From Macrostomum lignano (lineage: Eukaryota): 64,000 nucleotides of DNA. Under the pieces are notes generated by a model. That model saw only the letters and a list, made by a program, of their open reading frames with translations, searched no databases and was not told where the DNA came from. Positions 5,433 through 62,578 of this stretch are shown here, one piece after another (positions within the stretch are counted from its first letter, which is position 1; each line of letters begins with the position of its first letter). The translations under genes were made by a program, and so were the position numbers. The stretch spans positions 1 through 64,000 of the forward strand of contig NIVC01001540.1 in the NCBI GenBank assembly GCA_002269645.1, read 5' to 3'.

Positions 5433-5868
5433 TAATTAATGGCAGTTGTTATTGTTACGGTGACTGTATAAACAACAAAACGGTTATTTTTATGGTTAAC
5501 GCATAAGATACTATGTGGGCCTATGGTCTTTACTTAATGTAACCATATAAATAGCAAAACTTATTTTTATGGTCACCATAGATGGGAAGCAAAATGGCTA
5601 TTTTTATGGTCATGTGGAAGAAATTTCTGTTAAATTACAAGGTAATAGTAACAATTACCTAAAGTAAGCTACCATGACAAGAACCACTAGAAGTTACCAT
5701 GGTATTTATTAATAAAACGTTTCTTTATTTTTTAAATTCAACTATCATAGTATTTGCATAGCAAGTTCATCACTTCATTTAGATGGTACTTGTTTTAAGT
5801 GTTAACCGTAAAAATAACTGTCTCGCTATTTATACGGTCACCATAACAATGACAACTGCCTAATTAAT
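5433..5868. mobile_element. MITE of about 420 bp (5441-5860) with 62-bp TIRs starting GGCAG and an 8-bp flanking direct repeat TAATTAAT
   Basis: 5441-5502 matches the reverse complement of 5799-5860 at 52/62 positions. TAATTAAT lies at 5433-5440 and 5861-5868, but an AT-rich match could be partly chance. Confidence 0.75.
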
Positions 5869-6587
5869 ATAACTTTTACTAATGTCATTGAAACTAAAAT
5901 CTAGTAATAAATATATTTAAAAAATACTTTTATCACCTATTGATTAATGATAAAATTATATAACTTATCTACAAGACCAGAAACCATAGTAAAAAGTTGT
6001 TAGTCTTTAGTTACTTGGGTCAAAATTTAAGGTAAAAAAAGTAAAAATTCCAAAAATCTATTAAACAAAATGTTAATATTTTTACTTTCATCTTTTATAT
6101 TACTAAGCCTATCTGACTTATAGAAGTTGAAAAAGACTATAAACTCCATGTTTATATATTCAAATTTGATAATTGATAGAAGTCTTAAGAATCCCAAGAC
6201 CTATAATTATTGAATTATTAAAATCTTGAACTTAAGTAGTATCCAAAGTGCCAATTTGGTATCTTAGATCCAATGTTAGAATGTCAAAATTAAGGTTAAT
6301 ATATCATGATGCATGTTATGATACAACAAACTTAGTCTAAGACTATGCAAAATGTCCAATTTTTCATTTTAAAGAGAGCACTTGGGCTGATGGAGAAAGG
6401 GCAGAGAGAGTAATGTAAATAGTATAAATAGTATTTACAGTGTCTTAATTCAACCAAAGATGGCTATTCTAAATTTTCAGATGTACTCTAGTTAACATTT
6501 GCACTTTTATTTAAGAGCTAGAAGAGCAATAAGTTCTCCTAGGCCAACTGACATTGTGCAGTTTGCCTTTAGACAGCTGCCCACCAA

Positions 6588-9500
6588 ATGGGGGCCGCTC
6601 CATCTGCTCTGACTGACTCGAGCTCCGCTTCGTTAGGACAGTTTGGTTGCCATGGCAACAGCTCAGAAAAGAGCCAGCCGTTGTCGACTGGCTCGGCGAA
6701 TTCCTTTGCGCCGTCCGGTCACAGCCGCCAATCGTCGTCTTCCTCGTCGGCGACGGCCCGTCTGCAGCAGACGCTGAAACGGCGAGTCGCCTGGCTTCGG
6801 CGACGATCTTCGCCGGATCCGGCCAAGCAATTTCGCGCCTTCATCGCCGACTGGAGCTCCGCCGATCTGCGCGTCTTGCTGGACGAATTTGAGGCGCTGC
6901 ACGCGCTTAAAGATGCTCATCTGGGCGCTGCGGCAGCGAGGCCGCAGTGCAGCAGCCTGTGCCAGGACCTCGGCTGCCTGCTGCGCACCGGGCTCGGCTC
7001 CGACACTCGCCTGATCCTGGGCGGTGTCGCCTTCCCTGTCCATCGGGCGGTGCTGGCCGCTAGGAGCAACTTCTTTGCTAGGCTGTTTGCCAACGGCGAG
7101 GACTATGACTCGGCCGCAACTGGGGGCGCTGGTGAGCTTTTTTGTGTTCCGATGATAGGGTGACCTTTATTGACCCCGAATACAGTGACCCTAATTGACC
7201 TGATTACAGGGTGACCCTAATTGACCCCGATTACAGGGTGACCCTAATTGACCCCGATTACAGGGTGACCCTAATTGACCCCGATTACAGGGTGACCCTA
7301 ATTGACCCCGATTACAGGGTGACCCTAATTGACCCCGATTACAGTGGCCCTAGGTGACCCGATTATAGGTTGACCTTAATTGACATCTATGACAGTGACT
7401 CCGATTACAGGGTGACCCTAATTGACCCCGATTACAGTGGCCCTAGGTGACCTGATTACAGGGTGACCTTAATTGACCCCGGTTACAGGGTGACCCTAAT
7501 TGACCCCGCTTGCAGGATGATCCTAATTGACCCCGATTACAAGGTGACCCTGATTTTAGCTGATAACAAAGTGAATTTGATTGACCCCGCGGGACTCCAG
7601 CTGGGTGACTTCGAGCTGTAACGAGGATTCAACTTGTACAATCGTCAAAACGCTTGTACAAGAATCTGATATAAAGGACATTAACTGTGCACTCAACGCC
7701 ACCACCCCATTCCATAGATTACCCACTGGACCTGTGCGTCCCTGGCGGCCTCGACCCCGAGCTGCTCCGGGCCCTCCTGGCCTACCTGTACTGCGGCGAG
7801 GTCAGCCTGGCCCGCCTCAGCGCACCGGCCACTGTGGCCGCCCTTTGCCACGAGCTCGGCGCCCCCGGCCGTCTGTCCGACGATTTAGCCCAACTGTTGG
7901 ACACCGGCCACCTGGCCGACTGCGTGCTAATATTTGAGGAGGCCGAACCGCGGGCGAGGCGAATCGAGCTGCCCTGCCACCGGGCCCTGCTGGCCTGTCG
8001 ATCGCCGTTCTTTGCCGGCGTTGTCGAGAAACGCCTGGCCGCCGCCAGGAGGCACCGACGCCGGCGCCTTGTCCGCTGCGCGGTTCACGGCGGCGGTGAC
8101 GGCGTCGGCGATGCTCAACTGGCGGAGCCGCCTTTGGCGCTGGTGCTCGACGAGGCTGTGCTGCCGCGCCGCCTGGCGCCGGCTATGCTGACCTGCCTGT
8201 ACACCGACCGCCTGCCCGACTGCCTGGCACTGCGGGTGAGTCTTTGTTTTTGGCTTTTGAAGTTGTCTTTGTTTTGGCTTTTTGGGTAGTCTTTGTTTTG
8301 TCTTTTGAAGTAGTCTTGGTTTCGGCTTTTGAAGTAGCCTTGGTTTCAGTTTTTGGAGTAGTCTTTGTTTTGTCTTTTAGAGTAGTCTTTGTTTTGACTT
8401 GTGAAGTAGCCTTGGTTTCAGTTTTTGGAGTAGTCTTTGTTTTGTCTGTTGGAGTAGTCTTTGTTTTGCATTCGGGTAGATTGGGTTGCTCGTTCCGCAG
8501 TTACTTAGCCGGTAGTATCAGTGACCCTCTGTCTGCTCATGCCCAGGACCTGATGGATCTGCACGAGATTGGCCGTTTCCTTGAGCTGCCCTGTCTCACC
8601 CGGGCTAGTGAAGACCTACTGGTGGAGTCCCTGTGCCCGGACACCCTGGTGCCTGTCCTGGACTGGTCCGGCGCCGGCACCGGTTCTGCCTGGGTCCACC
8701 GACAGGCGCGCCTGTTCCTGTGCGAGGAATTCGCCGCGCTAGCCGTCCAAGCGCCGCGTGTGCTGACTCAGCTGAGCCGCCGGGAGCTGCTGGCCGCTCT
8801 GCGGTCCGACTTTCTACAAGCGGCCGAGTCTGACGTGCTGAGCGCCCTCATCGCCTGGGGCGAGGCGCAGGTGGCCGCCAGGGCTGCGGAAATTGTCGCG
8901 GGTATGTCTACGGGATGGACCCTGGATGCTGTGGTTTGGTGACCCTAAATGACCCTGGGATGATGTGGTTCGGTGACCCTAATTGACCCTGGGATGCTGG
9001 GTTCGGTGACCCTAACTGACCCTGGATCTGGGGTTCGGTGACCCTAACTGACCCTGGGATGCTGTGGTTCGGTGACCCTAACTGACCCTGGGATGCTGTG
9101 GTTCGGTGACCCTAACTGACCCTGGGATGCTGGGGTTCGATGACCCTAATTTACCCAGGGATGCTGTGGTTCGGTGACCCTAATTAACTCGAAGATTCTC
9201 GGGTTTTGAAACCCTAATGGACCCTAGGATGTCGGAGTTCGGTGACCCTAACTGACCCTTGAATGCTTAGTTTCGGTGGCTCTAATTGACCCTATGGCTC
9301 TGCGAGGTTTCTGTGACCTTAAATAACCCCAGGATTTTATGGTTCGGTCACCCTAATGACCCGAAGATTCCCGGGTTTGATGACCCTAACAGACCTTAGG
9401 ATAGAATTTCAATGGTTTGTATGACCTTAACCATAGGCAGACGGATGGCCGTTTTCGTCCATTCTGTCTACCTCCAAGCTAGACGGCATAAAATCAATCT

Positions 9501-12500
9501 CTATGGGCCAAATTTGTTGGAATTTTTACCACAGCCGTTCCCGACGACTAGAGGCCGAAAACGGCCATATAAATATTATGTATAAGGACTACTGACTGCT
9601 ATATATAACCTCGGCAACACCGGTTTCCGCAACCAGAATATCTAACGCCTTGCGCAAGAAGTGGAGGAAGGACATGCTGCCGCCGTGGTAATTGTACAAG
9701 ATCCAGGCGTTGCGGACAAGCAGCACAATCAGATGGAAAGCCAGCTTGTTGAACCAGCGCAGCGACTTGCGGTTTGCTATGTAGGGACTCGTGTTAGAGT
9801 CCATGCGGTCCACTCCACCCATACAACGACTGTACGTGGTGATGCTGACCGGCTTCGCCACCACTTGCTGCTGACCACCAGGGCGAACGCGGGCTACATC
9901 GTGGCACTGCGCGTTACCTGCCGTGTCCAGCAAGTACACAGTCTTCTTGCCACTGTTCTTGGAGTCTACAAACTTGCACGCCAGCACGTTGCCACACCTT
10001 GCGAATGCTGATGATGTGGGGTGCAGGTTAGTGTCTCGCAGCAGTGGCGGCGGTCCACGATCTTTGCGCACGGTGCCAGTCAGCATGGTGTCGCGGGCCA
10101 GTAGCCACGAAGCCAGTCGGTACGATGTAAACCAGCTGTCGGTGAAGATGCGATGGCCAAGATGTAGAATGTCGCGGCATAGCTCGGCTACGACTCGCTC
10201 ACTAAAGGACAGGGCCTCACAGTCCAGTCCGGCACCAAACCTGGCATTCTCCTGCTGCGTTGTGTGAACGGCAAAGTTCCACAGGTATCCGGACTTGGCC
10301 TCACACAGGCAGTATAACTTGATACCATACTTGCTCTTCTTAGAAGGAATGTACTGCCTAAACTGTACCCGTCCTTTGTACATGACCAGAGTCTCGTCAA
10401 TTGATAGATTCTGATCGGGCATGTAGTTGTTCCGACAGGCGTGCTGCACAAGAGCAAGGAATGGAGAGATTTTGTCCACAGGGCTTTGAGGAGCGGGACC
10501 AGCGCTACTGTAAAAGCGAAGGCAGGAGAGAATCTGCTTGAAACGATCGCGCGAAAGTGAATGTGGCTGAGCCAGAAACGTGCAGTGGTACACAGGATCC
10601 TTTGCCCAGTATGAGCTGATCTCCGGCTTGTCATCAATGCCCATAAGCAACACGATGCCGATCAGCTTCTTCACCTCGTCAACACTGCAATCCTTCCATG
10701 TAGACACAACCTTTGGTAACTCATCAGCTGACCTTTCCTGAGCGAAACTCCGGGCCCGTTCGTTCGTCCACCTTGCAATGTTCTCGAACAGCTCGTCGGT
10801 TAGGTATTGATGCAAAAACTCTGACTCACTGCCATTCGCTGATTGTGGTGGTACCCAGTCCGGCCGAAAACCTGGGGTGCCAATGAACTCTGGGACAGCC
10901 GTGGGCCTGTCGTCCGTCCCTTCGATAGCTTGGTGCCACTCGTGTTCTTCCTCCATTTCGACGTCCTCATCTGAGCTGCTGGCGCTTTCAACGTTGTCAC
11001 CATCCTCACCTGGCTCTTCATCAAAATAAAACGATCCGTCCTCGTCGTCAGTGAGAAAATTGTCCGAGTCCGACGTGTAAATGAGATCCATAACTAGTCA
11101 AAACTAAACTAAAAGTAAAATGCTCATATAAAGCAGTCCGTATAAATGAATTAAATAAGCGAACAGACACTAAATTTAAGCGAGACTATAGGCGGGAACG
11201 GTGGTAGCAGCAACATTTATGATCGTAAATTTGAAAACTGTCTATGGCTGTTTTCGGCCTATCCGTCGGGAACGGTTATAAGCGCCTAAAACTGCAGTCA
11301 AATAGAGGTTAAATGTCCTAGGCTTCTTTGCTTTCGTGACCCTAATTGACCCTAAAATTATTTTACTTCGATGGACACGACTGACTTGATATTTTTGCGG
11401 ATTCGGTGACCTTAGCTAACTTATTTGGTAAGGCTGGAGCATCATGAGTTGACTTTAGATAAGAAGGTTTTCCAGTACGAGTTGTTTTTACTATACTCGC
11501 CCTAATAACCGACAGCTCAGCCGCAGCTATTGCGTGGCGCATCTGAAGGCTGCGTACGGCTGTTCAGTCCAAGGACTGGGGGGTCGCCACACATCCCAGC
11601 TAATGTTGGCACCCATTTTACAGTTGGGTGAATTGACTCAATGCAGAGTTAGGTGTCTTGCTCAAGGACACAAATTGTTCCGAGTGGGCCGAGAATCGAA
11701 CCCCAGACCTTCCAGTCGCGAGTCCGACGCTCTGACCACTAGGCTTAACATCTTGCCAGTTAATGATCTTCTCTTCGGCAACTGGCCGCACTTTTATACC
11801 CCAGTTTGTTTCTCTTGTACTTGGCAAAGAAGGCACTTGATGAGGTGTTCCGGGATGCTGGACTGGCCCTAACCACCTCCCTCATCAATCATGGCGTCTG
11901 CGCGTGTTATGGAGGGGAGCCAGAGTGAGGCGAGATGTATAAAGTAAACAAGGCGATGTCAAGATTGACTACTGTTCTGGAAAATTTTCTGCTCCTACCT
12001 GCTGCTGCCTTGCTTGCCAATCGCGTATGTAGTCTGCGGATTTTATTGCTTCAACAGAAATAGCGAATCAAATGCCGAACTGCTGCTTTCGGCCATAATT
12101 TATGGCGGGACTGCCAATGGATTTGGGAGATTCACGGCCTACTAACGAGTTTTGCTATCTGCTACGCGCAGTTTAAGGTCACGTGGTCTGTTAGTAAAGC
12201 AATAAGCTTTGCTTTCTTTCTGTCGAATGTCTGGTAAAAGTTGCGCCAGTCGCAGTCCTAAGTCTCGTTAATTAACCACTTAGTTTTTAGTTTTCTAACC
12301 GTCGACTAGATTTTAGCGCCACAGTCTAGATTTTAGCGCCATCGACTAGATTTTAGCACTACAGATTAGATTTTAGCGCCACAGACTAGCTTTTGGTGCC
12401 ACAGACTAGATTTTAGCGCCACAGACTAGATTTTAGCGCCATCGGCTAGATTTTAGCGCCACAGACTAGATTTTTGTTCCTAAACTAGATTTTAGCGCAA

Positions 12501-26400: not shown

Positions 26401-27288
26401 CTCGGTGAGAGCCCACATCGCCTCTTCAATTTGGTCCGGATCTTGGGTGATGTCGTATACAATAACGTCGCACTCGACCAGATGTTCGTACATCTGCTCC
26501 CTGGTGTCGTACTAGAAAAGCAACATTTATGGTATTCGGTCAAATCTTCATCAGTATTGCAGACTAATCAGAATAAAACCCCAAATGAATAAGAAGCTTA
26601 CGCTGAGGATCTCCTTCACGAACTCTGGCTGCTTGGCCCCTGTCTTTTTCAAAGTGCCATGGATTTCATAGCAGCCTTCCTTTGGCTTCACTGGGAAGTC
26701 TCCGCTGAGGACAGATCCGGCCTCTTCCTCTTCTTCTTCGTTGTCTTCAAGAGTAGCACCAACGGCGCATTGTGAAAGGTACTGAAAGTCAAATGATTGT
26801 AATATAAATTTACTTTTTCAGTTCTGCAATGGAATCATTAAAAAGAGCGAAATTTCGAGTTAAACTTCTAGGTTAGTTTCTGGACCGAAATTATAAAAGT
26901 GAGCAAATAATAATTTCTGCTCTTTATTAGGTGGAATCAAGTAGTCAACTTAAATTGTGATCATAAATCATAATGAACTTTTTATAAAACAAGCTTAAAA
27001 TTTATTTAATCTAATATAGATTATCTAGGATGTTTTTTAAAGACTGCTAGACTGAAGAGTTATTTTAGTATTTTATTATTATATAATAAAATCACATTTT
27101 TAATAAATCAATATATCTATGACCTCTACCATCAAAACAACTGTAATTAGCATACAAATAACTTGAATAATAGTTTTCTGTCTCTTATCAAAACAGAAAT
27201 ATAAACTCACCTTTGAAATATGGTATCCCTGATATTCGTCAACATGATTGACGAAAATCCGAACTGGCTTGGTAGCTTCAGCAGCCAT
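20472..27288 (-). CDS. AK7: Adenylate kinase 7; 11 exons: 27288-27211, 26781-26602, 26511-26308, 26234-26124, 25905-25567, 24642-24364, 24242-24106, 24001-23901, 21888-21404, 20982-20824, 20510-20472 (about 703 aa)
   Basis: N-terminal NAD-binding-like region ([24 protein letters not shown]), P-loop [18 protein letters not shown], coiled coil, and a C-terminal Dpy-30 motif ([42 protein letters not shown]). All junctions are GT-AG and phase-compatible. Confidence 0.93.
21135..21410 (-). repeat. 33-bp repeat (TGGGTGAGTAGCGGGACTCGGTGCTCAATGGAG) x8 overlapping the AK7 exon 9 donor
   Basis: Translates as ([12 protein letters not shown])x8 in frame with the exon. Confidence 0.92.
21915..23220. repeat. 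33-bp palindromic minisatellite (GACTCCTCAGTCTATAGATCTGATATCTATAGC), about 40 copies, AK7 intron 8
   Basis: Each unit contains the hairpin CTATAGAT-CTGAT-ATCTATAG. Confidence 0.95.
24849..25030 (+). mobile_element. Degenerate RTE-like LINE fragment (post-RT C-terminal region), antisense in AK7 intron 5
   Basis: [32 protein letters not shown], with frameshifts; similar to 62058-62290. Confidence 0.7.
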
Positions 27289-27660
27289 TATGTTGACAGT
27301 TTTGGTGCGTACTAATCACTCACTATTTGGATTCCTCTCGTAGTGTTTTATAATAAGTAATTTAAAATGAACATAGTTCTATGTGTTACTAGAGAGACGA
27401 AACGCTTTTTTGCTACTTTATTTAAAAAATAACAAAAATTATTTTATTTTAAAATAGAAAAAGTAAGTCTACTGTTACTTTTTACCTCAAATTGTTGCAG
27501 ATTTTTTTCACTTTGTTTTACTTTAAACAACAAGCGTTGTCTAGGATTTAAATGTTGATTCCTTGAAAGTGGAACCACCTTCACTTGAGCTTACTTATTG
27601 AAATTGTTGTGTAGTATTTTGTATTTGTTACTTAGTAACTAAATTTCCGTACTCATATAG

Positions 27661-30600
27661 ATGACTCCAGAATAGTAAGTAACGATTTGAATCATTCTTT
27701 GCTCATTTAGTAGCTTTCCTGTTATCTCACTGGGTTATACACTCATGCTTTTTTACTTTGTTTGTATCTATAGTAGTCTAGACCTAAAGTAGTATAGATA
27801 TGAAATATAAAATCAGATATATAATATAAGATATAGCTAAGATATAAATTGATAATGCTGCATATTAAATAAAATTAAACTTTGCTTACCTATCTTGCTT
27901 TGGTGTCATAAAGGATAATGAATGTATGTATTTTAACCATCTATGTTGACAGTATTGTATCTTTTGTGATATTCAAATTGCAATGGCTAGACCTAATGGT
28001 TAATGTGACAAAGGTTGTCACTGAGTTAACTTTTTTAGTTTTACAGGTTATTTTTTAATTTTATATTAAAATGTTCCTATTAGAAAAAAATATCTTTAAA
28101 CCATTTGAAATAATACATAGTTAAGTTAATAACTTGACAAATTATTATGTAGTAGGTAACTATTATAAAGTAAAGATTTCTTTTTAATTTAAAGATTAGC
28201 TAATTGTTTAAAATAATCAATATAAAAAAATTAGGCTATAAGCCTAATTAAATAAATAAAATAGACAAACAAAAAGATTTTAAGAATTTTAAACTTCTCT
28301 TTCTATTATAGGCTAAACTATTATATATATATATATATATATATGTGGTATAAACTAAAACTTATTTGTTAAATATTAATAGCATGTATTATATTAGAAA
28401 TATAATATGCTTAAGTATTTTTCTAAACTTGTATAAATTAAATTATTTTATTTATTATTTATTTCTATGTTTAAAACAGAGGTAGACATGGGCAAAGTGG
28501 GAGTATAAACAAAAAACATAGCAAGGTAGGTCCCAAAGCAATCAAATATATTTTTTTTGCCAATAAACTAAATTAGAATTAAAAGAAATTAAAATAAAAA
28601 AGATTTGGCATAGTAGCAGGCCAAAAAATATGATCAAAATTTCTTTGGCCGCAGCTAAGGGGGGCCATGGCTCCCTTGGCCCCTCCTTTGGATCTACCCC
28701 TGCAATGATACTCTCTATGATTAAGGGGAGCAACATATAAAAAACCCATGATGATATGCATGCACCTTGGGCATTAGAGGTAGTTAGTTAAGGCAAATAT
28801 ATATTACGGGGGTTATAGCCTAGTGGTTAGAGCATTGGACTTATGATTAAAAGGTTTTGGGTTTGATTCCCAATCTTATTTGAATCCTTAAACAAAACAT
28901 AATTCTGCATTGCTTTAGTTCACCCAGCTATAAAATGGATACTTGCATTAGTTAGGATAATTGAAAGTATACATGGCAACCCCTTAGTCATTGGACTAAA
29001 CAGCCATATGCAGCCTTCAGATGCACCATGCAGTAGACTATAGCTGAGCTGATCTTTGCACATTTGCCCATTGCACATTAGGGCAAATGGAATAAATAAA
29101 TACATAAATAATTAATTTTACATACATATTACTGTATAAAATTCATAGGGCAAAAAGATACATAATGATGCAACAAGAGAGTGGGTTAGAATGATGGCAA
29201 GTGAAACAGTGAGGTGGATTGTTCAAACATTTAAAGTGTTTAAAGCTGCCTAATTTACCTGCTTTATGTTATATAAGATTATTATTGCAATATGGCATAT
29301 TATGCAGATGTTATAGTATGATATATTATACCATTGTATCTAATTACTAATATGACATGCTAATCTAGACTTTTGAGAATTTTTGTTAGCATATCTTACA
29401 AAAAATCTAAATTCTTAAAGACAGTTTTGAAGCAATTATTAATAGTATATTACAGTATATTTGTACTTTTTGGATAAAAAATCAAACTGTAATGTAATAC
29501 TTACTTTCCTTCACTTCCTTGCCCAAACCTATCAGCGACTACCTGTTCAAGCTGTTGCTTATTGGCGACTCGGGTGTTGGTAAAAGCTGCCTTCTGCTGC
29601 GCTTTGCTGATGACACTTACACAGACAGCTACATCAGCACCATTGGCGTGGATTTCAAGATTCGAACTATTGAACTGGATGGCAAAACTATCAAGCTGCA
29701 GGTTATTTATGTTTTTTTTTCAATTTTTTAGGAACTTCAATTTTTTACTGCAAATCTTAGCTTTGTCACAATAGAATCTGGTCAGACTAGATTGCAGTCA
29801 CAATATAATCTTAATCAGGCTGGATTGCAGTCACAACAGAATCTGGTCAGACTGGATTGCAGTCACAATATAATCTTAATCAGGCTGGATTGCAGTCACA
29901 ACAGAATCTGGTCAGACTAGATTGCAGTCACAACAGAATCTGGTCAGACTGGATTGCAGTCACAACACAATATAATCTTAATCAGGCTGGATTGCAGTCA
30001 CAACAGAATCTGGTCAGACTGGATTGCAGTCACAATATAATCTTAATCAGGCTGGATTGCAGTCACAACAGAATCTGGTCAGACTAGATTGCAGTCACAA
30101 CAGAATCTGGTCAGACTAGATTGCAGTCACAACAGAATCTGGTCAGACTGGATTGCAGTCACAACAGAATCTGGTCAGACTGGATTGCAGTCACAACACA
30201 ATATAATCTTAATCAGGCTGGATTGCAGTCACAACAGAATCTGGTCAGACTGGATTGTAGTCACAATATAATCTTAATCAGGCTGGATTGCAGTCACAAC
30301 AGAATCTGGTCAGACTGGATTGCAGTCACAATATAATCTTAATCAGGCTGGATTGCAGTCACAACAGAATCTGGTCAGACTAGATTGCAGTCACAACAGA
30401 ATCTGGTCAGACTAGATTGCAGTCACAATATAATCTTAATCAGGCTGGATTGCAGTCACAACAGAATCTGGTCAGACTGGATTGCAGTCACAACAGAATC
30501 TGGTCATACAAATACAATCCTGCTTTCGCAACCATCATTCTAGATCTGGGACACGGCCGGCCAGGAGCGGTTCCGCACCATCACCTCATCCTACTATCGC

Positions 30601-31808
30601 GGCGCCCACGGCATCATCGTAGTCTATGACGTCACCGACCAGGACTCTTTCAACAACGTGAAGAACTGGCTGCAGGAGATCGAGCGCTACGCCTCCGACA
30701 GCGTCAACCGCCTGCTAGTGGGAAACAAGTGCGACCTCACGGCCAACAAGGTGGTGGACTTTGCCACCGCCAAGGTGAGGCTGCTTTCTGTTGATGTTAA
30801 CCTTGAATCCCAGTGTACTCTGGTTGTTCTCGAAACCCTTTATGTACACCCACAGACCGACCCGATTGTACAACCATAGTCATCCTCACAGTTCACACAC
30901 TGCCACACTCACACCCCCACAGACCCCACTGTACGCCCACTGCCACACTCCCACAGACCCCACTGTACACCCAGTTGTACACCCCCACAGACCCCACTGT
31001 ACACTCAGTTGCGCACCCCATAGACCCACTGTACACCCACTGCCACACTCCCACAGACCCCATTGTACACCCACTGCCACACCCCCACAGACCCCACTGT
31101 ACACCCACTGCCACACTCCCACAGACCCCACTGTACACCCACTGCCACACTCCCACAGACCCCACTGTACACCCACTGCCACACCCCCACAGACCCCACT
31201 GTACACTCAGTTGCGCACCCCATAGACCCACTGTACACCCACTGCCACACTCCCACAGACCCCATTGTACACCCACTGCCACACCCCCACAGACCCCACT
31301 GTACACCCACTGCCACACTCCCACAGACCCCACTGTACACCCAGTTGTACACCCCCACAGACCCCACTGTACACTCAGTTGCGCACCCCATAGACCCACT
31401 GTACACCCACTGCCACACTCCCACAGACCCCATTGTACACCCACTGCCACACCCCACAGACCCCACTGTACACCCACTGCCACACTCCCACAGACCCCAC
31501 TGTACACCCACTGCCACACTCCCACAGACCCCACTGTACACCCACTGCCACACCCCCACAGACCCCACTGTACATCCAGTTGCACACCTGACCCCTCAAC
31601 CCACCAGGAATACGCCGAGTCCCTGGGCATTCAATTCCTGGAGACCAGCGCCAAGAACGCCACCAATGTGGAGCAGGCGTTCTTGTCCATGGCCTCGGAG
31701 ATCAAGGCACGAATGGGGCCTGTGACAGCCGACCAAAAGACTCGGCCGGCCATCAAAGTCAACCCGGGCACTCAGCCGGTCAAGTCTGGCGGTGGCGGAT
31801 GCTGCTAA
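27661..31808 (+). CDS. RAB1: Rab1 small GTPase; exons 27661-27674, 29536-29701, 30544-30774, 31608-31808
   Basis: MTPEY|[47 protein letters not shown]-terminal GGCC. The 14-nt first coding exon ATGACTCCAGAATA|GTAAGT supplies the missing phase-2 Tyr. AATAAA at 31906. Confidence 0.95.
28640..28705. mobile_element. Decayed MITE-like end (GGGGGGCCATGGCTCCC..GGATCTACCCCTG)
   Basis: Resembles the common invertebrate non-autonomous element end GGATCCGCCCCTG with CG>TA. Recognition from memory only. Confidence 0.4.
28812..29100 (+). mobile_element. tRNA/CORE-like SINE copy B, heavily C>T/G>A mutated, in Rab1 intron 1
   Basis: Colinear with copy A: head AGCCTAGTGGTTAGAGCATTGG, TTCACCCAGCTATAAAATGG, CAGCCTTCAGATGC, TTAGGGC, and an AATAAATAAA tail. 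Confidence 0.85.
29765..30506. repeat. Composite 32/33-bp minisatellite in Rab1 intron 2
   Basis: Interspersed units GATTGCAGTCACAACAGAATCTGGTCAGACTG and GATTGCAGTCACAATATAATCTTAATCAGGCTG. Confidence 0.9.
30845..31590. repeat. 34-bp minisatellite (CCACTGTACACCCACTGCCACACTCCCACAGACC) in Rab1 intron 3
   Basis: Period 34 (31141, 31175); runs up to the acceptor. Confidence 0.92.
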
Positions 31809-37753: not shown

Positions 37754-40192
37754 CTAGTAAGTTAGTTAGTTGGTTGGCTAGTTAATTACTCGTAGTTAGC
37801 TAGTTAGTTAGTTGGTTAGTTAGCTAGTAAGTTAGTTAGTTGGTTGGCTAGTTAATTACTCGTAGTTAGCTAGTTAGTTAGTTAGTTAGCTTGTTTGTTT
37901 TTTGTTTGTTTGTTTGTTAGCTAGCTAGTTTAATTTGCTTGTTAGTTGGCTGTCTGCATGGGTGCTTCGAGTGCAGCCGCAAGCAGTCATACTCATTCCT
38001 CTGCACGCGCACGCATACTTACGCAGACACGCTTACACGGGGTGTAGAACAGGCGCGACTTTCTTATCGTCAGGCATGTAGAAAAGTGTGACCTCTGGAG
38101 GTTGGTCCTCCTGTGGTTGGAGGGGCTTGAGTCAAACGGACAAGACCGCTCAGCATGCATGGACCTTTCCTTGACGCCAGAGTCCGATGTGTCAGCGCCT
38201 CGCTACTCAACTCAGCTGGCAAAGCTTCAATGTAGTCAACACTGAATCGCGAATTGTTTGATCTATTCCGGAGTCATTTAAGAGATGCGAAAAGCGTGTT
38301 TGCACTGTTCAACCCTCGGTTTAGTAAAGACACTGTAATCGCTAAACACTTGAGAGCCGGCCTTCTTGAGGATCATGCGGCGTCGTTTTGAGTAGATATT
38401 CTTTTCTATTTGTCTTAAGCAATCTGTAGCCATTGCTTGTGTGTGTCTCCACGCATATACCTTCTATAGATTTCACATGACAAACACACTCTTTATGTTT
38501 AACATTCTGAAGATTTATTTAGTCTAAGGATGAGCTTCAACTCGCGGACTGTTATGTAAACTACGAGCACCCTCTAGAATAATAAAATAAAAATCTTGTA
38601 TACTCTACTCATTTACTTGAGCAAGTAGTATAATTCGGTCTGGCTAGATACCTTCATTAGCTGGCGTAACAGCCGCTGATAATAGAACACGTAGCGCTTG
38701 GAGTGCGGCAGATCACTGGCCGCCTGCGCCACCTCCTCGGACAGCTGCTGCAGGTTCCGGCCGAGCACCAGGTCGGCCGCTCGGTCTCTGAGTAGCCGTT
38801 CGATCTGGGCCACCCGGCCAGCGCCAGGCTCCAGCTTACCGTCCGGCTGGCGGTGCGACCCGGTCATGTCGTTGATGAAACCGACAATCTCGTGCAGGTC
38901 CACGTCGCCGCCGTATCTGGTTTAAGGGGATTTGGCGAGATCGTTCTGTTTGACCGGAGCGTTACGATTGTCGATTGGGGGGTTAACACCCAGCTGTTGG
39001 ATCAAGGTTGTCTGTTCGATTGAAAGACTGCATGTTCGATTGGAAGGTTGCATGTTTGATTGGAAGGTTGCCTGTTTGATTGGAAGGTTGCCTGTTTGAT
39101 TGGAAGGTTGCATGTTTGATTGGAAGGTTGCATGTTTGATTGGAAGGTTGCCTGTTCGGTTGGAAGGTTGCCTGTTTGATTGAAAAGTTGCATGTTCGAT
39201 TGGAAGGTTGCCTGTTTGATTGGAAGGTTGCATGTTTGATTGGAAGGTTGCATGTTTGATTGGAAGGTTGCATGTTTGATTGGAAGGTTGCATGTTTGAT
39301 TGGAAGGTTGCATGTTTGATTGGAAGGTTGCATGTTCGATTGGAAGGTTGCATGTTTGATTGGAAGGTTGCATGTTTGATTGGAAGGTTGCGTGTCTAAA
39401 ATTTTGCCTAACTGATTAGAGGACCATCTGTTCACCCAATGGGCTTAGTGATTTAGGTCAAAGGGTTGCAGTAGAGCATGCAAGTCTCAAACTCGGAACC
39501 TCACCTCACAATGTTATTCTTGTCGCCCCTGGGGAACCACAGCAGCGTCGGGTTCCTCTGCGCCTGAAAGAACCTCGCCAGCTGAGGTTCCCGGGTCACG
39601 TCCGCCCGGCCGAACACCACGTGGTGGCCCTCGTGCCGGAAGACGTCGGCAATTTTCTCGTAGACCGCGCACGGCTCGCCACACTCCGGCGTGTACAGAG
39701 CCAGCATGGCGTTGGTCTCGTTGTCCAGGATCACGGACGCGTAGCTGCTGGCGTTCACCACCACCGTGGCGCCAGTTGTCCACGGGTTCGCTGAGTCGCC
39801 TTCGTCTGCCGCTCCGCCATCGTCGGTCGCGGTCTCCAGCGAGGCGCCGCCGTAGAGACTCTCGCCGGAGCGCGTCAGGCCGGCCTTGACGGCACTCTGC
39901 AGGCGAAGGCCGCGCAGGAATTTCACCAGCGCCTCCTCGGTCACCTCGCCGTAGAAGGTGATCGGCGTCGACGAATGAGGGAAGGCCTTCAACACCGGCA
40001 CTTCATCGGCGTGGAACCGCATGGCCAGCACCGGCTCCTGGCGGATGTCGATGCGGCCGAATTTTACGTCCGGATGCGAAACGGAGTGGGACAGGGCCAG
40101 GCTGCGGGTGCGAGGCGGATCGGGGCTCGGTGTCTGCGAGTTCTGGGGCTTTATGAAATCAATGGCAGACAGACATACACTCGGACACACAG

Positions 40193-40226
<34 letters not shown>

Positions 40227-40236
40227 AGAAAGACAA

Positions 40237-40270
<34 letters not shown>

Positions 40271-40274
40271 AGAA

Positions 40275-40349
<75 letters not shown>

Positions 40350-40350
40350 A

Positions 40351-40381
<31 letters not shown>

Positions 40382-40382
40382 A

Positions 40383-40441
<59 letters not shown>

Positions 40442-40442
40442 A

Positions 40443-40493
<51 letters not shown>

Positions 40494-40494
40494 A

Positions 40495-40525
<31 letters not shown>

Positions 40526-40526
40526 A

Positions 40527-40589
<63 letters not shown>

Positions 40590-40654
40590 AAGACAGACAG
40601 ACAGACAGACAGACAGAAAGACAGACAGATAGACAGACAGACAGACAGACAGAA

Positions 40655-40725
<71 letters not shown>

Positions 40726-40758
40726 AAGACAGACAGACAGACAGACAGAAAGACAGAC

Positions 40759-40809
<51 letters not shown>

Positions 40810-40834
40810 TAGATAGACAGACAGATAGACAGAC

Positions 40835-40897
<63 letters not shown>

Positions 40898-41119
40898 TAG
40901 ACAGTCAGGCTGACAGGCGCACAGGCAGCCTCACCGCTGCATGACGGAGAGCACCTCCACGCAGGGCTGGCAGCCGGGCGAGTAGAACAGCACCAGCGCC
41001 AGAGTCTTGGTGCCCACAACGCTGGCCAAGTTCTTCTCCGTGATGTCCAGCACCCGTTTAGCCTCGGCCGGGCTTATCGGTGATAGCAGGCCGGCCAGAA
41101 GCGGCAGCAGCAGCAGCAT
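36601..41119 (-). CDS. PDI-D / ERp38-ERp29 family ER protein (signal peptide, two thioredoxin-like domains, helical D domain, KEEL); exons 41119-40935, 40101-39505, 38916-38652, 36939-36601
   Basis: Hydrophobic leader; FYSPGCQPC and LYTPECGEPC active-site-like motifs; NPTLLWFPRG..YGGDVDLHEIVGFINDMTG..GKLEPGAGRV; C-terminal ATKEEL*. Junction phases 2, 2, 0 are compatible. Confidence 0.82.
37140..37935. repeat. (TTAG)n-type degenerate microsatellite in PDI-like intron 3
   Basis: GTTAGTTAG runs with GCTA/GTTG variants. Confidence 0.92.
38985..39390. repeat. 20-bp minisatellite (GATTGGAAGGTTGCATGTTT)
   Basis: About 20 copies in PDI-like intron 2. Confidence 0.92.
40165..40905. repeat. (CAGA)n microsatellite filling PDI-like intron 1
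   Basis: About 180 tetramer units with AAGA/TAGA variants. Confidence 0.96.
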
Positions 41120-45447: not shown

Positions 45448-48400
45448 ATGCCAACCACCCCCCCCCCTCAGCCAATTTTGTAACTGCTTTTGCTGTCGTT
45501 CTGTGCTTGCTGGGTTCGGCGACCGCCTACAGGCAGCTCATGCGGACTGGCAAGTGTGAGTATCCCGATTCTCCCTAAATCCCGATTCTCCCTAAATCCC
45601 GATTCTCCCTAAATCCTGATCCCTCCCTAAATCCCGATTGTTCCTAAATCCCGATTCTCCCTAAATCCCGATTCTCCCTAAATCCCGATTCTCCCTAAAT
45701 CCTGATCCCTCCCTAAATCCCGATTGTTCCTAAATCCCGATTCTCCCTAAATCCCGATTCTCCCTACATTCCGATTCTCCCTAAATCCTGATCCCTCCCT
45801 AAATCCCGATTGTTCCTAAATCCCGATTCTCTCTAAATCCCGATTCTCCCTACATCCCGATTCTCCCTAAATCCCGATTCTCTCTAAATCCCGATTCTCC
45901 CTAAATCCCGATTCTCCCTAAATCCTGATCCCTCCCTAAATCCCGATTCTCCCTAAATTCCGATTCTCTCTAAATCCCGATTCTCCCTACATCCCGATTC
46001 TCCCTAAATCCCGATTCTCTCTAAATCCCGATTCTCTCTAAATCCCGATTCTCTCTAAATCCCGATTCTCCCTAAATCCCGATTCTCCCTAAATCCCGAT
46101 TCTCCCTAAATCCCGATTCTCCCTACATCCCGATTCTCTCTAAATCCCGATTCTCTCTAAATCCCGATTCTCTCTAAATCCCGATTCTCCCTAAATCCCG
46201 ATTCTCCCTACATCCCGATTCTCCCTAAATCCCGATTCTCTCTAAATCCCGATTCTCTCTAAATCCCGATTCTCCCTAAATCCCGATTCTCTCTAAATCC
46301 CGATTCTCTCTAAATCCCGATTCTCTCTAAATCCCGATTCTCCCTAAATCCCGATTCTCCCTAAATCCCGATTCTCTCTAAATCCCGATTCTCCCTAAAT
46401 CCCGATTCTCTCTAAATCCCGATTCTCCCTACATCCCGATTCTCTCTAAATCCCGATTCTCCCTACATCCCGATTCTCCCTAAATCCCGATTCTCTCTAA
46501 ATCCCGATTCTCCCTAAATCCCGATTCTCCCTAAATCCCGATTCTCCCTAAATCCCGATTCTCCCTAAATCCCGATTCTCCCTAAATCCCGATTCTCCCT
46601 AAATCCCGATTCTCCCTAAATCCTGATCCCTCCCTAAATCCCGATTCTCCCTAAATCCCGATTCTCTCTAAATCCCGATTCTCCCTACATCCCGATTCTC
46701 CCTAAATCCCGATTCTCCCTAAATCCCGATTCTCTCTAAATCCCGATTCTCCCTAAATCCCGATTCTCCCTAAATCCCGATTCTCCCTAAATCCCGATTC
46801 TCCCTAAATCCTGATCCCTCCCTAAATCCCGATTGTTCCTAAATCCCGATTCTCCCTAAATCCCGATTCTCTCTAAATCCCGATTCTCCATAAATCCCGA
46901 TTCTCTCTAAATCCCGATTCTCCCTAAATCCCGATTCTCCATAAATCCCGATTCTCTCTAAATCCCGATTCTCCCTAAATCCCGATTCTCCCTAAATCCC
47001 GATTCTCCCTACATCCCGATTCTCTCTAAATCCCGATTCTCCCTAAATCCCGATTCTCTCTAAATCCCGATTCTCCCTAAATCCCGATTCTCTCTAAATC
47101 CCGATTCTCCCTAAATCCCGATTCTCCCTAAATCCCGATTCTCTCTAAATCCCGATTCTCCCTAAATCCCGATTCTCTCTAAATCCCGATTCTCCCTACA
47201 TCCCGATTCTCTCTAAATCCCGATTCTCCCTACATCCCGATTCTCCCTAAATCCCGATTCTCTCTAAATCCCGATTCTCCCTAAATCCCGATTCTCCCTA
47301 AATCCTGATCCCTCCCTAAATCCCGATTCTCCCTAAATCCCGATTCTCCCTACATCCCGATTCTCCCTAAATCCCGATTCTCTCTAAATCCCGATTCTCT
47401 CTAAATCCCGATTCTCTCTAAATCCCGATTCTCCCTAAATCCCGATTCTCCCTAAATCCCGATTCTCCCTAAATCCCGATTCTCCCTAAATCCTGATCCT
47501 CCCTAAATCCCGATTGTTCCTAAATCCCGATTCTCCCTAAATCCCGATTCTCTCTAAATCCCGATTCTCCATAAATCCCGATTCTCTCTAAATCCCGATT
47601 CTCCCTAAATCCCGATTCTCCATAAATCCCGATTCTCTCTAAATCCCGATTCTCCCTAAATCCCGATTCTCCCTAAATCCCGATTCTCCCTACATCCCGA
47701 TTCTCTCTAAATCCCGATTCTCCCTAAATCCCGATTCTCTCTAAATCCCGATTCTCCCTAAATCCCGATTCTCACAAAATCCTGATCCCTCCCTAAATCC
47801 CGATTCTCCCTAAATCCCGATCCTCCCTACATCCCGGATTCTCCCTAAATCCCAATTCTCCCTAAATCCCGATTCTCCCTAAATCCCGATTCTCTCTAAA
47901 TCCCGATTCTCCCTAAATCCCGATTCTCACAAAATCCTGATCCCTCCCTAAATCCCGATTCTCCCTAAATCCCGATTCTCCCTAAATCCCGATTCTCTCT
48001 AAATCCCGATTCTCCCTAAATCCCGATTCTCCCTAAATCCCGATTCTCCCTAAATCCCGATTCTCCCTAAATCCTGATCCCTCCCTAAATCCCGATTGTT
48101 CCTAAATCCCGTATGTCCCTAAATCCCGATTCTCTCTAAATCCCGATTCTCCCTAAATCCCAATTCTTCCTAAATCCAAATTCTTCCTAAATCCCGATTC
48201 TCCCTAAATCCCATTCTTCCTAAATCCAAATTCTTCCTAAATCCCGATTCTCCCTAAATCCCGATTCTCCCTAAATCCCGATTCTCCCTAAATCCTGATC
48301 CCTCCCTAAATCCCGATTGTTCCTAAATCCCGATTCTCCCTAAATCCCGATTCTCTCTAAATCCCGATTCTCTCTAAATCCCGATTGTTCCTAAATCCCG

Positions 48401-51400
48401 ATTCTCCCTAAATCCCGATTCTCTCTAAATCCCGATTCTCCATAAATCCCGATTCTCTCTAAATCCCGATTCTCCCTAAATCCCGATTCTCCATAAATCC
48501 CGATTCTCCCTAAATCCCGATTCTCCCTAAATCCCGATTCTCCCTACATCCCGATTCTCTCTAAATCCCGATTCTCCCTAAATCCCGATTCTCTCTAAAT
48601 CCCGATTCTCCCTAAATCCCGATTCTCTCTAAATCCCGATTCTCCCTAAATCCCGATTCTCCCTAAATCCCGATTCTCTCTAAATCCCGATTCTCCCTAA
48701 ATCCCGATTCTCCCTAAATCCCGATTCTCTCTAAATCCCGATTCTCTCTAAATCCCGATTCTCTCTAAATCCCGATTCTCCCTACATCCCGATTCTCCCT
48801 AAATCCCGATTCTCTCTAAATACCGATTCTCCCTAAATCCCGATTCTCCCTAAATCCTGATCCCTCCCTAAATCCCGATTCTCCCTAAATCCCGATTCTC
48901 CCTACATCCCGATTCTCCCTAAATCCCGATTCTCTCTAAATCCCGATTCTCTCTAAATCCCGATTCTCTCTAAATCCCGATTCTCCCTAAATCCCGATTC
49001 TCCCTAAATCCCGATTCTCCCTAAATCCCGATTCTCCCTAAATCCTGATCCCTCCCTAAATCCCGATTGTTCCTAAATCCCGATTCTCCCTAAATCCCGA
49101 TTCTCTCTAAATCCCGATTCTCCATAAATCCCGATTCTCTCTAAATCCCGATTCTCCCTAAATCCCGATTCTCCATAAATCCCGATTCTCTCTAAATCCC
49201 GATTCTCCCTAAATCCCGATTCTCCCTAAATCCCGATTCTCCCTACATCCCGATTCTCTCTAAATCCCGATTCTCCCTAAATCCCGATTCTCTCTAAATC
49301 CCGATTCTCCCTAAATCCCGATTCTCACAAAATCCTGATCCCTCCCTAAATCCCGATTCTCCCTAAATCCCGATCCTCCCTACATCCCGGATTCTCCCTA
49401 AATCCCAATTCTCCCTAAATCCCGATTCTCCCTAAATCCCGATTCTCCCTACATCCCGATTCTCTCTAAATCCCGATTCTCCCTAAATCCCGATTCTCTC
49501 TAAATCCCGATTCTCCCTAAATCCCGATTCTCACAAAATCCTGATCCCTCTAAATCCCGATTCTCCCTAAATCCCGATTCTCCCTAAATCCCGATTCTCT
49601 CTAAATCCCGATTCTCCCTAAATCCCGATTCTCCCTAAATCCCGATTCTCCCTAAATCCCGATTCTCCCTAAATCCCATTCTCCTAAATCCAAATTCTTC
49701 CTAAATCCCGATTCTCCTAAATCCCGATTCTTCCTAAATCCCAATTCTTCCTAAATCCCGATTCTTCCTAAATCCCGATTCTCCCTAAATCCCGATTCTC
49801 CTAAATCCTGATTCTCCTAAATCCCGATTCTTCCTAAATCCCGATTCTCCCTAAATCCCGATTCTCCCTAAATCCCGATTCTCTCTAAATCCCGATTGTT
49901 CCTAAATCCCGATTCTCCCTAAATCCCGATTCTCTCTAAATCCCGATTCTCCTAAATCCCGATTCTCTCTAAATCCCGATTCTCCCTAAATCCCGATTCT
50001 CTAAATCCCGATTCTCCCTAAATCCCGATTCTCCTAAATCCCGATTCTCCCTAAATCCCGATTCTCTCTAAATCCCGATTCTCCCTAAATCCCGATTCTC
50101 TCTAAATCCCGATTCTCCCTAAATCCCGATTCTCTCTAAATCCCGATTCTCCCTAAATCCCGATTCTCCCTAAATCCCGATTCTCCCTAAATCCCGATTC
50201 TCCCTAAATCCCGATTCTCCCTAAATCCCGATTCTCCCTAAATCCCGATTCTCTCTAAATCCCGATTCTCCTAAATCCCGATTCTCCCTAAATCCCGATT
50301 CTCTCTAAATCCCGATTCTCTCTAAATCCCGATTCTCCTAAATCCCGATTCTCCCTAAATCCCGATTCTCCCTAAATCCCGATTCTCCCTAAATCCCGAT
50401 TCTCCCTAAATCCCGATTCTCCCTAAATCCCGATTCTCTCTAAATCCCGATTCTCTCTAAATCCCGATTCTCTCTAAATCCCGATTCTCCCTAAATCCCG
50501 ATTCTCCTAAATCCCGATTCTCCCTAAATCCCGATTCTCCCTAAATCCCGATCTCCCTAAATCCCGATTCTTCCTAAATCCCGATTCTCCCTAAATCCCG
50601 ATTCTCTCTAAATCCCGATTCTCCCTAAATCCCGATTCTCTCTAAATCCCGATTCTCCCTAAATCCCGATTCTCCATAAATCCCGATTCTCTCTAAATCC
50701 CGATTCTCCCTAAATCCCGATTCTCCCTAAATCCCGATTCTCCCTAAATCCCGATTCTCTCTAAATCCCGATTCTCCCTAAATCCCGATTCTCCCTAAAT
50801 CCCGATTCTCCCTAAATCCCGATTCTCACAAAATCCTGATCCCTCCCTAAATCCCGATTCTCCCTAAATCCCGATTCTCCCTAAATCCCGATTCTCCCTA
50901 AATCCCATTCTCCCTAAATCCCGATTCTCCCTAAATCCCGATTCTCCCTAAATCCCGATTCTCCCTAAATCCCGATTCTCACAAATCCCGATTCTCCCTA
51001 AATCCCGATTCTCCCTAAATCCCGATTCTCCCTAAATCCCGATTCTCTCTAAATCCCGATTCTCCCTAAATCCCGATTCTCTCTAAATCCCGATTCTCCC
51101 TAAATCCCGATTCTCCATAAATCCCGATTCTCTCTAAATCCCGATTCTCCCTAAATCCCGATTCTCCCTAAATCCCGATTCTCCCTAAATCCCGATTCTC
51201 TCTAAATCCCGATTCTCCCTAAATCCCGATTCTCTCTAAATCCCGATTCTCCCTAAATCCCGATTCTCACAAAATCCTGATCCCTCCCTAAATCCCGATT
51301 CTCCCTAAATCCCGATCCTCCCTAATCCCGATTCTCCCTAAATCCCATTCTCCCTAAATCCCGATTCTCCCTAAATCCCGATTCTCTCTAAATCCCGATT

Positions 51401-62297: not shown

Positions 62298-62578
<281 letters not shown>

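Follow-up and report, generated by a model that had tools for sequence, protein, structure and literature searches.

We analysed a 64-kb stretch of DNA from Macrostomum lignano (GenBank assembly GCA_002269645.1, contig NIVC01001540.1, positions 1 to 64,000 of the forward strand; hereafter the window) and found that the first intron of its Rab1 gene has lost almost all of its CpG dinucleotides. Judged from the DNA sequence, this loss is probably a trace left by methylation of gene 5′ parts in the germ line. The depletion, its borders, the rule of sequence context that it follows, its dependence on position and the background mutational equilibrium were all observed directly. Intron 1 (27675-29535) has a GC content of 0.28 and three CpGs, at 27683, 28650 and 28807, giving an observed/expected ratio (o/e) of 0.08 for CpG and of 1.81 for GpC; the next CpG, at 29536, is the first base of exon 2. 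Base composition predicts 36.0 CpGs between 27685 and 29535, where only 2 are present (Poisson P = 1.5e-13), whereas GpC, used as the control dinucleotide, occurs 66 times (o/e 1.83). CpG is thus depleted relative to composition while GpC is not, as a footprint of germ-line CpG methylation requires.

A preliminary description of this DNA had reported 2 CpGs in about 1850 bp, with CpGs returning at the first base of exon 2, and our recount agrees on both points. It had also presented the depletion as localised to intron 1. That intron is depleted, but introns 2 (29702-30543; 1 CpG, o/e 0.03) and 3 (30775-31607; 7 CpGs, o/e 0.16) are CpG-poor as well, and consist mostly of tandem arrays with units that lack CpG (a 32-bp array at 29765-30506 and a 34-bp array at 30910-31588, respectively). 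The Rab1 exons keep their CpGs, with o/e values of 0.64 in exon 2 (29536-29701), 1.02 in exon 3 (30544-30774; 21 CpGs) and 0.77 in exon 4 including the stop codon (31608-31808). Over the whole coding sequence, the CpG o/e is 0.85 and the GC content at third codon positions (GC3) is 0.76. At synonymous codon boundaries in these exons, we counted 24 CpGs against 33 expected and 15 TpGs against 10 expected, a deficit that is presumably a mild form of the intron signal, held in check by selection for C-ending codons.

The Rab1 locus and CpG-free stretches at gene starts

The spliced Rab1 model comprises four exons, all on the forward strand, and yields a protein of 203 amino acids with 100% identity to M. 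lignano BOX15_Mlig021247g3. Exon 1 (27661-27674) is a mini-exon of 14 nt (ATG ACT CCA GAA TA); an MTPEY mini-exon is also present in a Rab1 paralogue (L006 9990-10014, where L numbers designate loci). The ATG stands immediately 3′ of the sequence ...catatag (window 27652-27674), a putative acceptor for a spliced leader or for an intron in the 5′ untranslated region (UTR). The gene was found on three contigs of the assembly, referred to as locus copies L001, L002 and L003, and the AT-rich, CpG-depleted domain of intron 1 occurs in all three. L002 matches the window exactly across the stretch compared, which takes in intron 1 and the start of the gene. The other two, L001 and L003, are sister copies, either haplotypes or recent duplicates, which differ by 0-6% in a mosaic pattern. 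Within the mosaics (window 17661-41808), L003 matches L002 over 24.6-29.6 kb and L001 past 29.7 kb; by sequence comparison, this pattern points to recombination or gene conversion between the copies.

The upstream border of the domain lies at exon 1. The promoter side (26600-27660), shared with a divergent adenylate-kinase/Dpy-30 gene that starts about 370 bp upstream of Rab1, is AT-rich yet keeps its CpGs (21 between 26500 and 27660, o/e 0.71), and the promoter side of the paralogue in L006 has an o/e of 1.02. Just downstream of exon 1, the ratio is 0.08 in the window and 0.25 or less in the paralogue. Six other gene loci also have CpG-free, AT-rich, non-tandem runs of 0.6-2.1 kb, either within intron 1 or immediately 5′ of the start codon. 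These runs belong to Rab1 paralogues (L006 10010-10619 and 11889-13369; L007 812-1499), RPS4 (L006 22134-24250; L004 28321-29686), the galactokinase gene GalK (L006 2001-3500), a CP2/GRHL gene (L008 14804-16930) and, in the window, a BTB gene, whose CpG-poor AT-rich stretch (4594-6595) contains CpG-free runs at 4594-5457 and 5836-6595 and ends at the ATG at 6588. When 61 AT-rich non-tandem windows of 500 bp were examined, they fell into two classes, 16 with an o/e below 0.1 and about 23 with an o/e of at least 0.6. The similar stretches at the 5′ ends of other genes agree with the association with first introns that the preliminary description had proposed. Its further proposal, that decay tracks position and not repeat identity, is borne out by control elements that keep their CpGs, namely a piggyBac transposase open reading frame (ORF) on the reverse strand (9589-11091; 62-77 CpGs in about 1.1-1.3 kb) and two copies of a short interspersed element (SINE), copies A and C, which are described below.

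Directional decay of SINE and MITE copies

Intron 1 carries a decayed, tRNA-derived SINE (SINE B, 28812-29100, forward strand; 0 CpGs, GC 0.37), for which a CpG-intact sister copy exists outside the depleted domains (SINE A, 11507-11749, reverse strand; 13-14 CpGs, GC 0.55). The tRNA-like head of SINE B (28815-28874) is matched by the Rfam tRNA model with 34.6 bits (gathering score 29); Rfam returned no tRNA match in SINE A, and ARAGORN found no tRNA in the window. With a tRNA-like 5′ head and dispersed copies at unrelated sites, the family is a tRNA-derived SINE. A weak Rfam match of the same head, on the reverse strand, to a Plastid-ycf2 5′ UTR RNA (28815-28874; 30.8 bits, gathering score 65.7) is almost certainly spurious.

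SINE B and SINE A align over 226 bases with 78.8% identity and 48 substitutions. In the direction A to B, 36 of these are deamination-type changes (19 G>A and 17 C>T), as opposed to 4 A>G and 0 T>C; by context, CpG and CpA/TpG account for 13 each of the 36 and other sites for 10. SINE B retains none of the 11 alignable CpGs of SINE A, each of which was lost by transitions (to TG, CA or TA), one of them as a CG>TA double hit. The loss of every CpG in the two segments compared, the non-CpG changes and the CG>TA double hits had all been claimed for SINE B in the preliminary description, and its count for a segment of the SINE body, 8 of 9 substitutions in the C>T or G>A direction, was reproduced exactly. 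For the head, the directional bias stands, but the count is 11 of 12 in the new alignment and not 15 of 17.

We then considered every copy of this family in about 250 kb of M. lignano DNA, which amounts to five independent insertions. SINE C is intergenic, downstream of a Rab1 paralogue, and occurs in L004, L005 and L006; SINE D lies just 5′ of the galactokinase gene; SINE E is antisense in intron 1 of another Rab1 paralogue. Two further M. lignano loci, retrieved by the piggyBac search, contained no SINE copy. To measure age independently of deamination, we added transversions to A>G/T>C changes; the sums are 13 for B, 13 for A, 14 for C, 16 for E and 30 for D (transversions alone: 11 in B, 7 in A and 10 in C). 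The corresponding numbers of C>T changes are 45 in B, 10 in A, 14 in C, 42 in E and 27 in D. Since the deamination-independent counts of B and A are equal, the excess in B reflects a higher C>T rate tied to position and not to age.

The background spectrum was obtained from 19 tandem arrays of the window, in which variants were polarised against the consensus of each unit. GC>AT changes occur at 0.062 per site and AT>GC changes at 0.023 per site, a ratio of 2.6-2.7 that predicts an equilibrium GC content of 27-28%. As the GC content of intron 1 is 28%, its AT-richness and most of its non-CpG drift need no special process. Mutation rates in the arrays are alike at CpG (0.052), CpA (0.043) and other C (0.047), and excess change at CpG or CpA is absent even from arrays of as many as 390 units; CpG hypermutability is therefore not genome-wide. 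For the genome as a whole, a 2.6:1 bias towards AT and an equilibrium near 27-28% GC provide a neutral benchmark, which accounts for its mosaic of old, AT-rich non-coding DNA beside GC-rich exons, repeats and satellites.

These data bear on whether age alone might account for the state of SINE B, with B being much older than A and subject only to the genome-wide AT bias and ordinary CpG decay, without any positional process. The background bias does predict the GC content of intron 1, and SINE B must have decayed before the three locus copies split, since each of them carries it in a CpG-free state. Even so, we regard this explanation as very unlikely. Greater age of B, a possibility that the preliminary description had itself raised against its claim, is ruled out by the matching deamination-independent counts of B, A and C. 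Moreover, neither the tandem arrays nor SINE A and SINE C show hypermutability at CpG (CpG rate 0.09 in the two SINE copies). SINE C retains 11-12 of 14 CpGs despite being older than a split since which the surrounding non-coding DNA has diverged to about 84-85% identity, and next to the depleted stretches there is AT-rich DNA in which CpG is at normal levels.

Alternatively, B, D and E might derive from an AT-richer source gene than A and C, in which case many of the differences between A and B would be inherited. B, D and E do share the states CTGAAC>CTAAAC and CCGTACG>CCATATG, and B and E have 8 GC>AT changes in common. However, the sets {A,C} and {B,D,E} differ in only about 5 columns, and three of the positions mutated in both B and E still carry G in the L001 copy of B, showing that those hits were independent. 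The private changes of B comprise 12 GC>AT transitions against 1 AT>GC, and the CpA excess described below survives strict majority-rule reconstruction, which leaves the age results unchanged as well. Shared ancestry of B, D and E thus appears to account for little of the signal, and a subfamily artefact is the least probable of the explanations that we weighed.

Between positions 28700 and 29160, 8 of the 12 differences between locus copies are G in L001 and A in L002 and L003 on the sense strand, all within about 450 bp. Five of the eight lie in SINE B (28930, 28941, 28954, 28971 and 29080) and are TpG>TpA, and three of these five coincide with sites that are also mutated in SINE E. The three SINE B sites that can be aligned to SINE A have G there, which makes A the derived state. 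This run may be a strand-coordinated cluster or a set of recurrent hot spots, although it is statistically marginal and was chosen post hoc. Gene conversion was rejected as the source of the five differences in SINE B, as L001 keeps all B-specific states and no CpG has been restored. Unpolarised differences between the locus copies gave no direction (42 versus 39), and their contexts did not discriminate.

A second family, of about 300 bp, consists of miniature inverted-repeat transposable elements (MITEs) with the ends CATACATGCGCAAC...GTTGCGCATGTATG and is represented at L004:25978-26277, L004:28289-28584, L006:10705-11012, L009:20381-20673 and L008:14610-14787. A very young copy in an RPS4 intron of L004 has 22 CpGs and a target duplication of about GGGTCAAT, with an empty site in L005/L006. 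Decayed copies are found 5′ of RPS4, in intron 1 of a Rab1 paralogue, nested inside SINE D, and in L009.

In both families, C>T change depends on the 3′ neighbour. The rates in SINE B, D and E are 0.54 at CpG, 0.29 at CpA, 0.14 at CpC and 0.15 at CpT, and those in the decayed MITE copies are 0.42 at CpG and 0.13 at CpA, followed by 0.09 and 0.06 for CpC and CpT. CpG is thus lost by transitions several-fold faster than other C, as a methylation footprint requires. With SINE and MITE copies pooled, CpA exceeds CpC/CpT with an odds ratio of 2.1 (P = 4e-4). CpA>TpA changes affect 35-37 of 128-134 sites in SINE B, D and E, which lie in depleted domains, and 1 of 82-86 sites in A and C, which lie outside them (P ~ 1e-7), in keeping with the non-CpG component that had been described; rates at CpC and CpT do not differ between the two sets. 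The value for A and C is itself oddly low, at 1 of 82 when about 9 would be expected. These results are suggestive of a real CpA component in the SINE copies, with few elements behind it.

The 5′ neighbour has no comparable influence. Non-CpG C>T rates in the SINE copies are 0.19 after A, 0.22 after C, 0.16 after G and 0.23 after T, and no consistent 5′-neighbour preference was seen in the MITE copies. Both strands are affected, with 0.247 G>A and 0.197 C>T changes per site (P = 0.07). A transcription-strand asymmetry was rejected, being not significant and tracking the orientation of the element, not that of the gene. The C>T hierarchy matches the target preference of DNA methyltransferases and neither that of AID/APOBEC nor that of repeat-induced point mutation (RIP) in Neurospora.

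Methylation and its alternatives

The affected stretch begins just downstream of the promoter, and within it C has turned into T over evolutionary time on both strands, far more quickly at CpG than at other cytosines and at about double their rate at CpA. If germ-line methylation is responsible, DNMT1 and DNMT3 would methylate the 5′ transcribed part of genes in the germ line or in neoblasts, the stem cells that feed it, and 5-methylcytosine (5mC) would afterwards deaminate spontaneously. The genome-wide mutation bias towards AT, about 2.6:1 per site, is superimposed on this and takes unconstrained old sequence to about 27-28% GC. Mobile elements landing in the stretch are slowly stripped of CpG and drift towards AT, copies elsewhere keep their CpGs, and exons presumably remain GC- and CpG-rich through a strong preference for C-ending codons. 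It is methylation as the agent, and the germ line as the cells concerned, that we infer here.

M. lignano is reported to have retained DNMT1 and DNMT3 and to have low levels of 5mC (PMC11292947, PMC9246332, PMC10658182). Gene-body methylation, which the preliminary description had mentioned as a possible driver, is therefore the best fit (PMC11292947, PMC9246332). Mosaic gene-body cytosine methylation is the general invertebrate pattern (PMC11292947), and the layout of methylation along the genome is reported to be undescribed in free-living flatworms (PMC11292947, PMC9246332, PMC10658182). On the best reading, the process is thus of a known kind with a layout that is unmapped in this lineage, and it is unusual in that exons are spared and that a CpA component may be involved.

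Rab1 resembles genes under invertebrate gene-body methylation in several respects. CpG has given way to TpG and CpA in a constitutively expressed gene, the promoter is spared, repeats, which look unmethylated, and intergenic DNA keep their CpGs, and the species has both DNMT1 and DNMT3. The 5′ location also has a parallel in holometabolous insects, in which methylation is weighted to the 5′ part of genes. In contrast to the usual invertebrate case, the Rab1 introns are nearly CpG-free (o/e 0.03-0.16) and the exons barely depleted, some stretches lie upstream of the annotated start codon, and there is additional CpA>TpA change. The order of the C>T rates corresponds to the targets of mammalian DNMT3 (CG >> CA > CT, CC), and non-CpG (CpA) methylation by DNMT3 occurs in mammalian oocytes, neurons and stem cells. 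CpA methylation in M. lignano is putative, unlike the mammalian case, and no mutational footprint of DNMT3 non-CpG methylation is known from animal germ lines.

Several observations weigh against methylation of the gene body as the explanation. Gene-body methylation also depletes exons of CpG in most invertebrates, and strong codon selection (GC3 0.76) is needed to reconcile it with the coding CpG o/e of 0.85. Confinement to the transcribed body is seen in Rab1 and its paralogue, where the border lies at exon 1; at the other four genes (RPS4, GalK, CP2/GRHL and BTB), the stretches lie upstream of the annotated start codon and may be promoter DNA or else transcribed, in the form of a 5′ UTR intron or a trans-spliced leader. 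Plausible AG acceptor sites, candidates for splicing or trans-splicing, are present upstream of the start codons. The CpA effect also varies between copies: SINE B, SINE E and two of the MITEs show it strongly, whereas SINE D and two further MITEs show it weakly or not at all. In independent insertions, the sample amounts to only five SINEs and about six MITEs. The CpG-free stretches, 14 kb in total, have a (CA+TG)/(CT+AG) ratio of 0.93, only 14% below the 1.08 of CpG-normal AT-rich DNA. Finally, a 2022 review calls the genomic methylation pattern in free-living flatworms unknown (PMC9246332).

L001 and L002 diverge by 3-5% in the intron and by 4.7-5% on the adjacent promoter side, and a raised overall rate in the intron was not seen in the divergence of the locus copies. 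Intron 1 of L001 alone contains a 621-bp inverted-repeat element (L001:10301-10921; 22 CpGs, o/e 0.88), which is absent from the window at about 27960 and thus constitutes an insertion polymorphism between locus copies. Its terminal inverted repeats are 132 bp long, with arms that are 95.5% identical, and 4 of the 6 arm differences are CpG transitions; no second copy was found in the M. lignano DNA examined. The MITE in intron 1 of the paralogue has lost 13 of 22 CpGs. From these sequences, the domain looks like the product of gradual, context-dependent erosion and not of a burst.

The preliminary description had gone further and proposed a germ-line system that heavily methylates or directly deaminates cytosines in promoter-proximal introns and thereby erases inserted elements. 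A burst-like or RIP-like system of erasure is not supported: SINE B was CpG-free before the locus copies split, intron divergence is not raised, the younger 621-bp element keeps its 22 CpGs in the same intron, and the GC content is that of the neutral equilibrium. What remains of the proposal is a process that is position-dependent, specific for C>T and inclusive of CpA; a dedicated hypermutation or erasure system is not supported. In one form, such a system would be a zone anchored at promoters, some 1.5-2 kb long and spanning the first intron or the trans-spliced leader region, in which cytosines at CpG and CpA are turned into T on both strands in any sequence, so that mobile elements inserted beside a promoter are eroded according to position and not homology, whether by unusually dense CG and CA methylation restricted to the zone or by DNMT-assisted or other enzymatic deamination. 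We consider this rather unlikely.

Fungal RIP shares with the present case C>T/G>A changes with a CpA>TpA component, which degrade mobile elements and leave AT-rich DNA. RIP is triggered by duplication and acts in bursts, whereas here repeated arrays and other SINE copies are untouched and decay is slow and linked to position; CpA is the dominant target in Neurospora, whereas here the rate at CpG exceeds that at CpA in both families. A fungal-type RIP was rejected on the basis of the unaffected arrays, the intact SINE A and C, and the absence of CpA dominance.

Deamination near promoters without methylation would be another route, either in AT-rich DNA that heavy transcription leaves partly unwound over its first 1.5-2 kb (through negative supercoiling or R-loops) or by recruitment of an AID/APOBEC-type deaminase. 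A stretch that begins at exon 1, extends over 1.5-2 kb and occurs in housekeeping genes resembles the window of somatic hypermutation anchored to the transcription start site, and the run of G/A differences on the sense strand of L001 and L002, five of them at TpG in SINE B, would fit as well. Nevertheless, we judge this explanation unlikely, if less so than the other alternatives to methylation. AID and APOBEC are directed by the 5′ base (WRC and TpC, respectively), whereas here only the 3′ base matters and the signal is heritable through the germ line. The flat rates by 5′ neighbour in the SINE copies (0.16-0.23), and the lack of a consistent preference in the MITE copies, led us to reject an AID/APOBEC rule, as the lack of a 5′-neighbour effect argues against such a deaminase. 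There is no significant strand asymmetry and, beyond the one weak hint above, no clear strand-coordinated cluster. The effect is strongest at CpG, which is the signature of 5mC, locus-copy divergence is not raised, and CpGs persist in a younger element within intron 1.

Selection might also produce stretches with a fixed place relative to genes and sharp borders, if a lack of CpG and a high AT content in first introns, or in a stretch that is trans-spliced off, served a function such as splicing signals, nucleosome exclusion or the avoidance of silencing, with CpG-destroying changes in inserted elements being favoured. The near absence of CpG, with an o/e of 0.01 over 14 kb in runs chosen for lacking CpG, would be in line with this. 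Yet every CpG loss in the alignment of SINE A with SINE B took the form of a transition to TpG or CpA, which is what deamination would produce, the GC content is that expected at equilibrium under neutral mutation, and young CpG-rich insertions are tolerated in the same introns. Selection therefore seems improbable to us.

Germ-line methylation of gene 5′ parts makes a prediction for M. lignano, a flatworm laboratory model that still has DNMT1 and DNMT3. The footprints predict methylation at the first introns and 5′ leaders of constitutively expressed genes, and not at repeats, and this methylation may include CpA. A single methylome would test the prediction directly.

Other genes and repeats of the window

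The piggyBac ORF is intact, with 500 amino acids and a DDE_Tnp_1_7 domain (E = 1.7e-68), and its closest M. lignano relatives are 46-62% identical. Neighbouring genes include a ferritin gene of 170 amino acids on the reverse strand (2335-2847), which is apparently intronless, an exon of a ZIP zinc transporter on the forward strand (1046-1915) and the first exon of the BTB-domain gene, also on the forward strand (6588-7163).

The window contains at least 30 different mini- and microsatellite arrays, and its GC content ranges from 0.18 to 0.74 in 500-bp windows. An array of 6.6 kb (45562-52194) consists of about 390 units of 17 bp (ATCCCGATTCTCCCTAA) and has a CpG o/e of about 2.3; after it comes a short array with the unit in reverse complement (52688-53060), in a head-to-head arrangement. 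A (CAGA)n array at 40166-40916 and, far from it, a (TGTC)n array at 62298-62578 make up an inverted pair.

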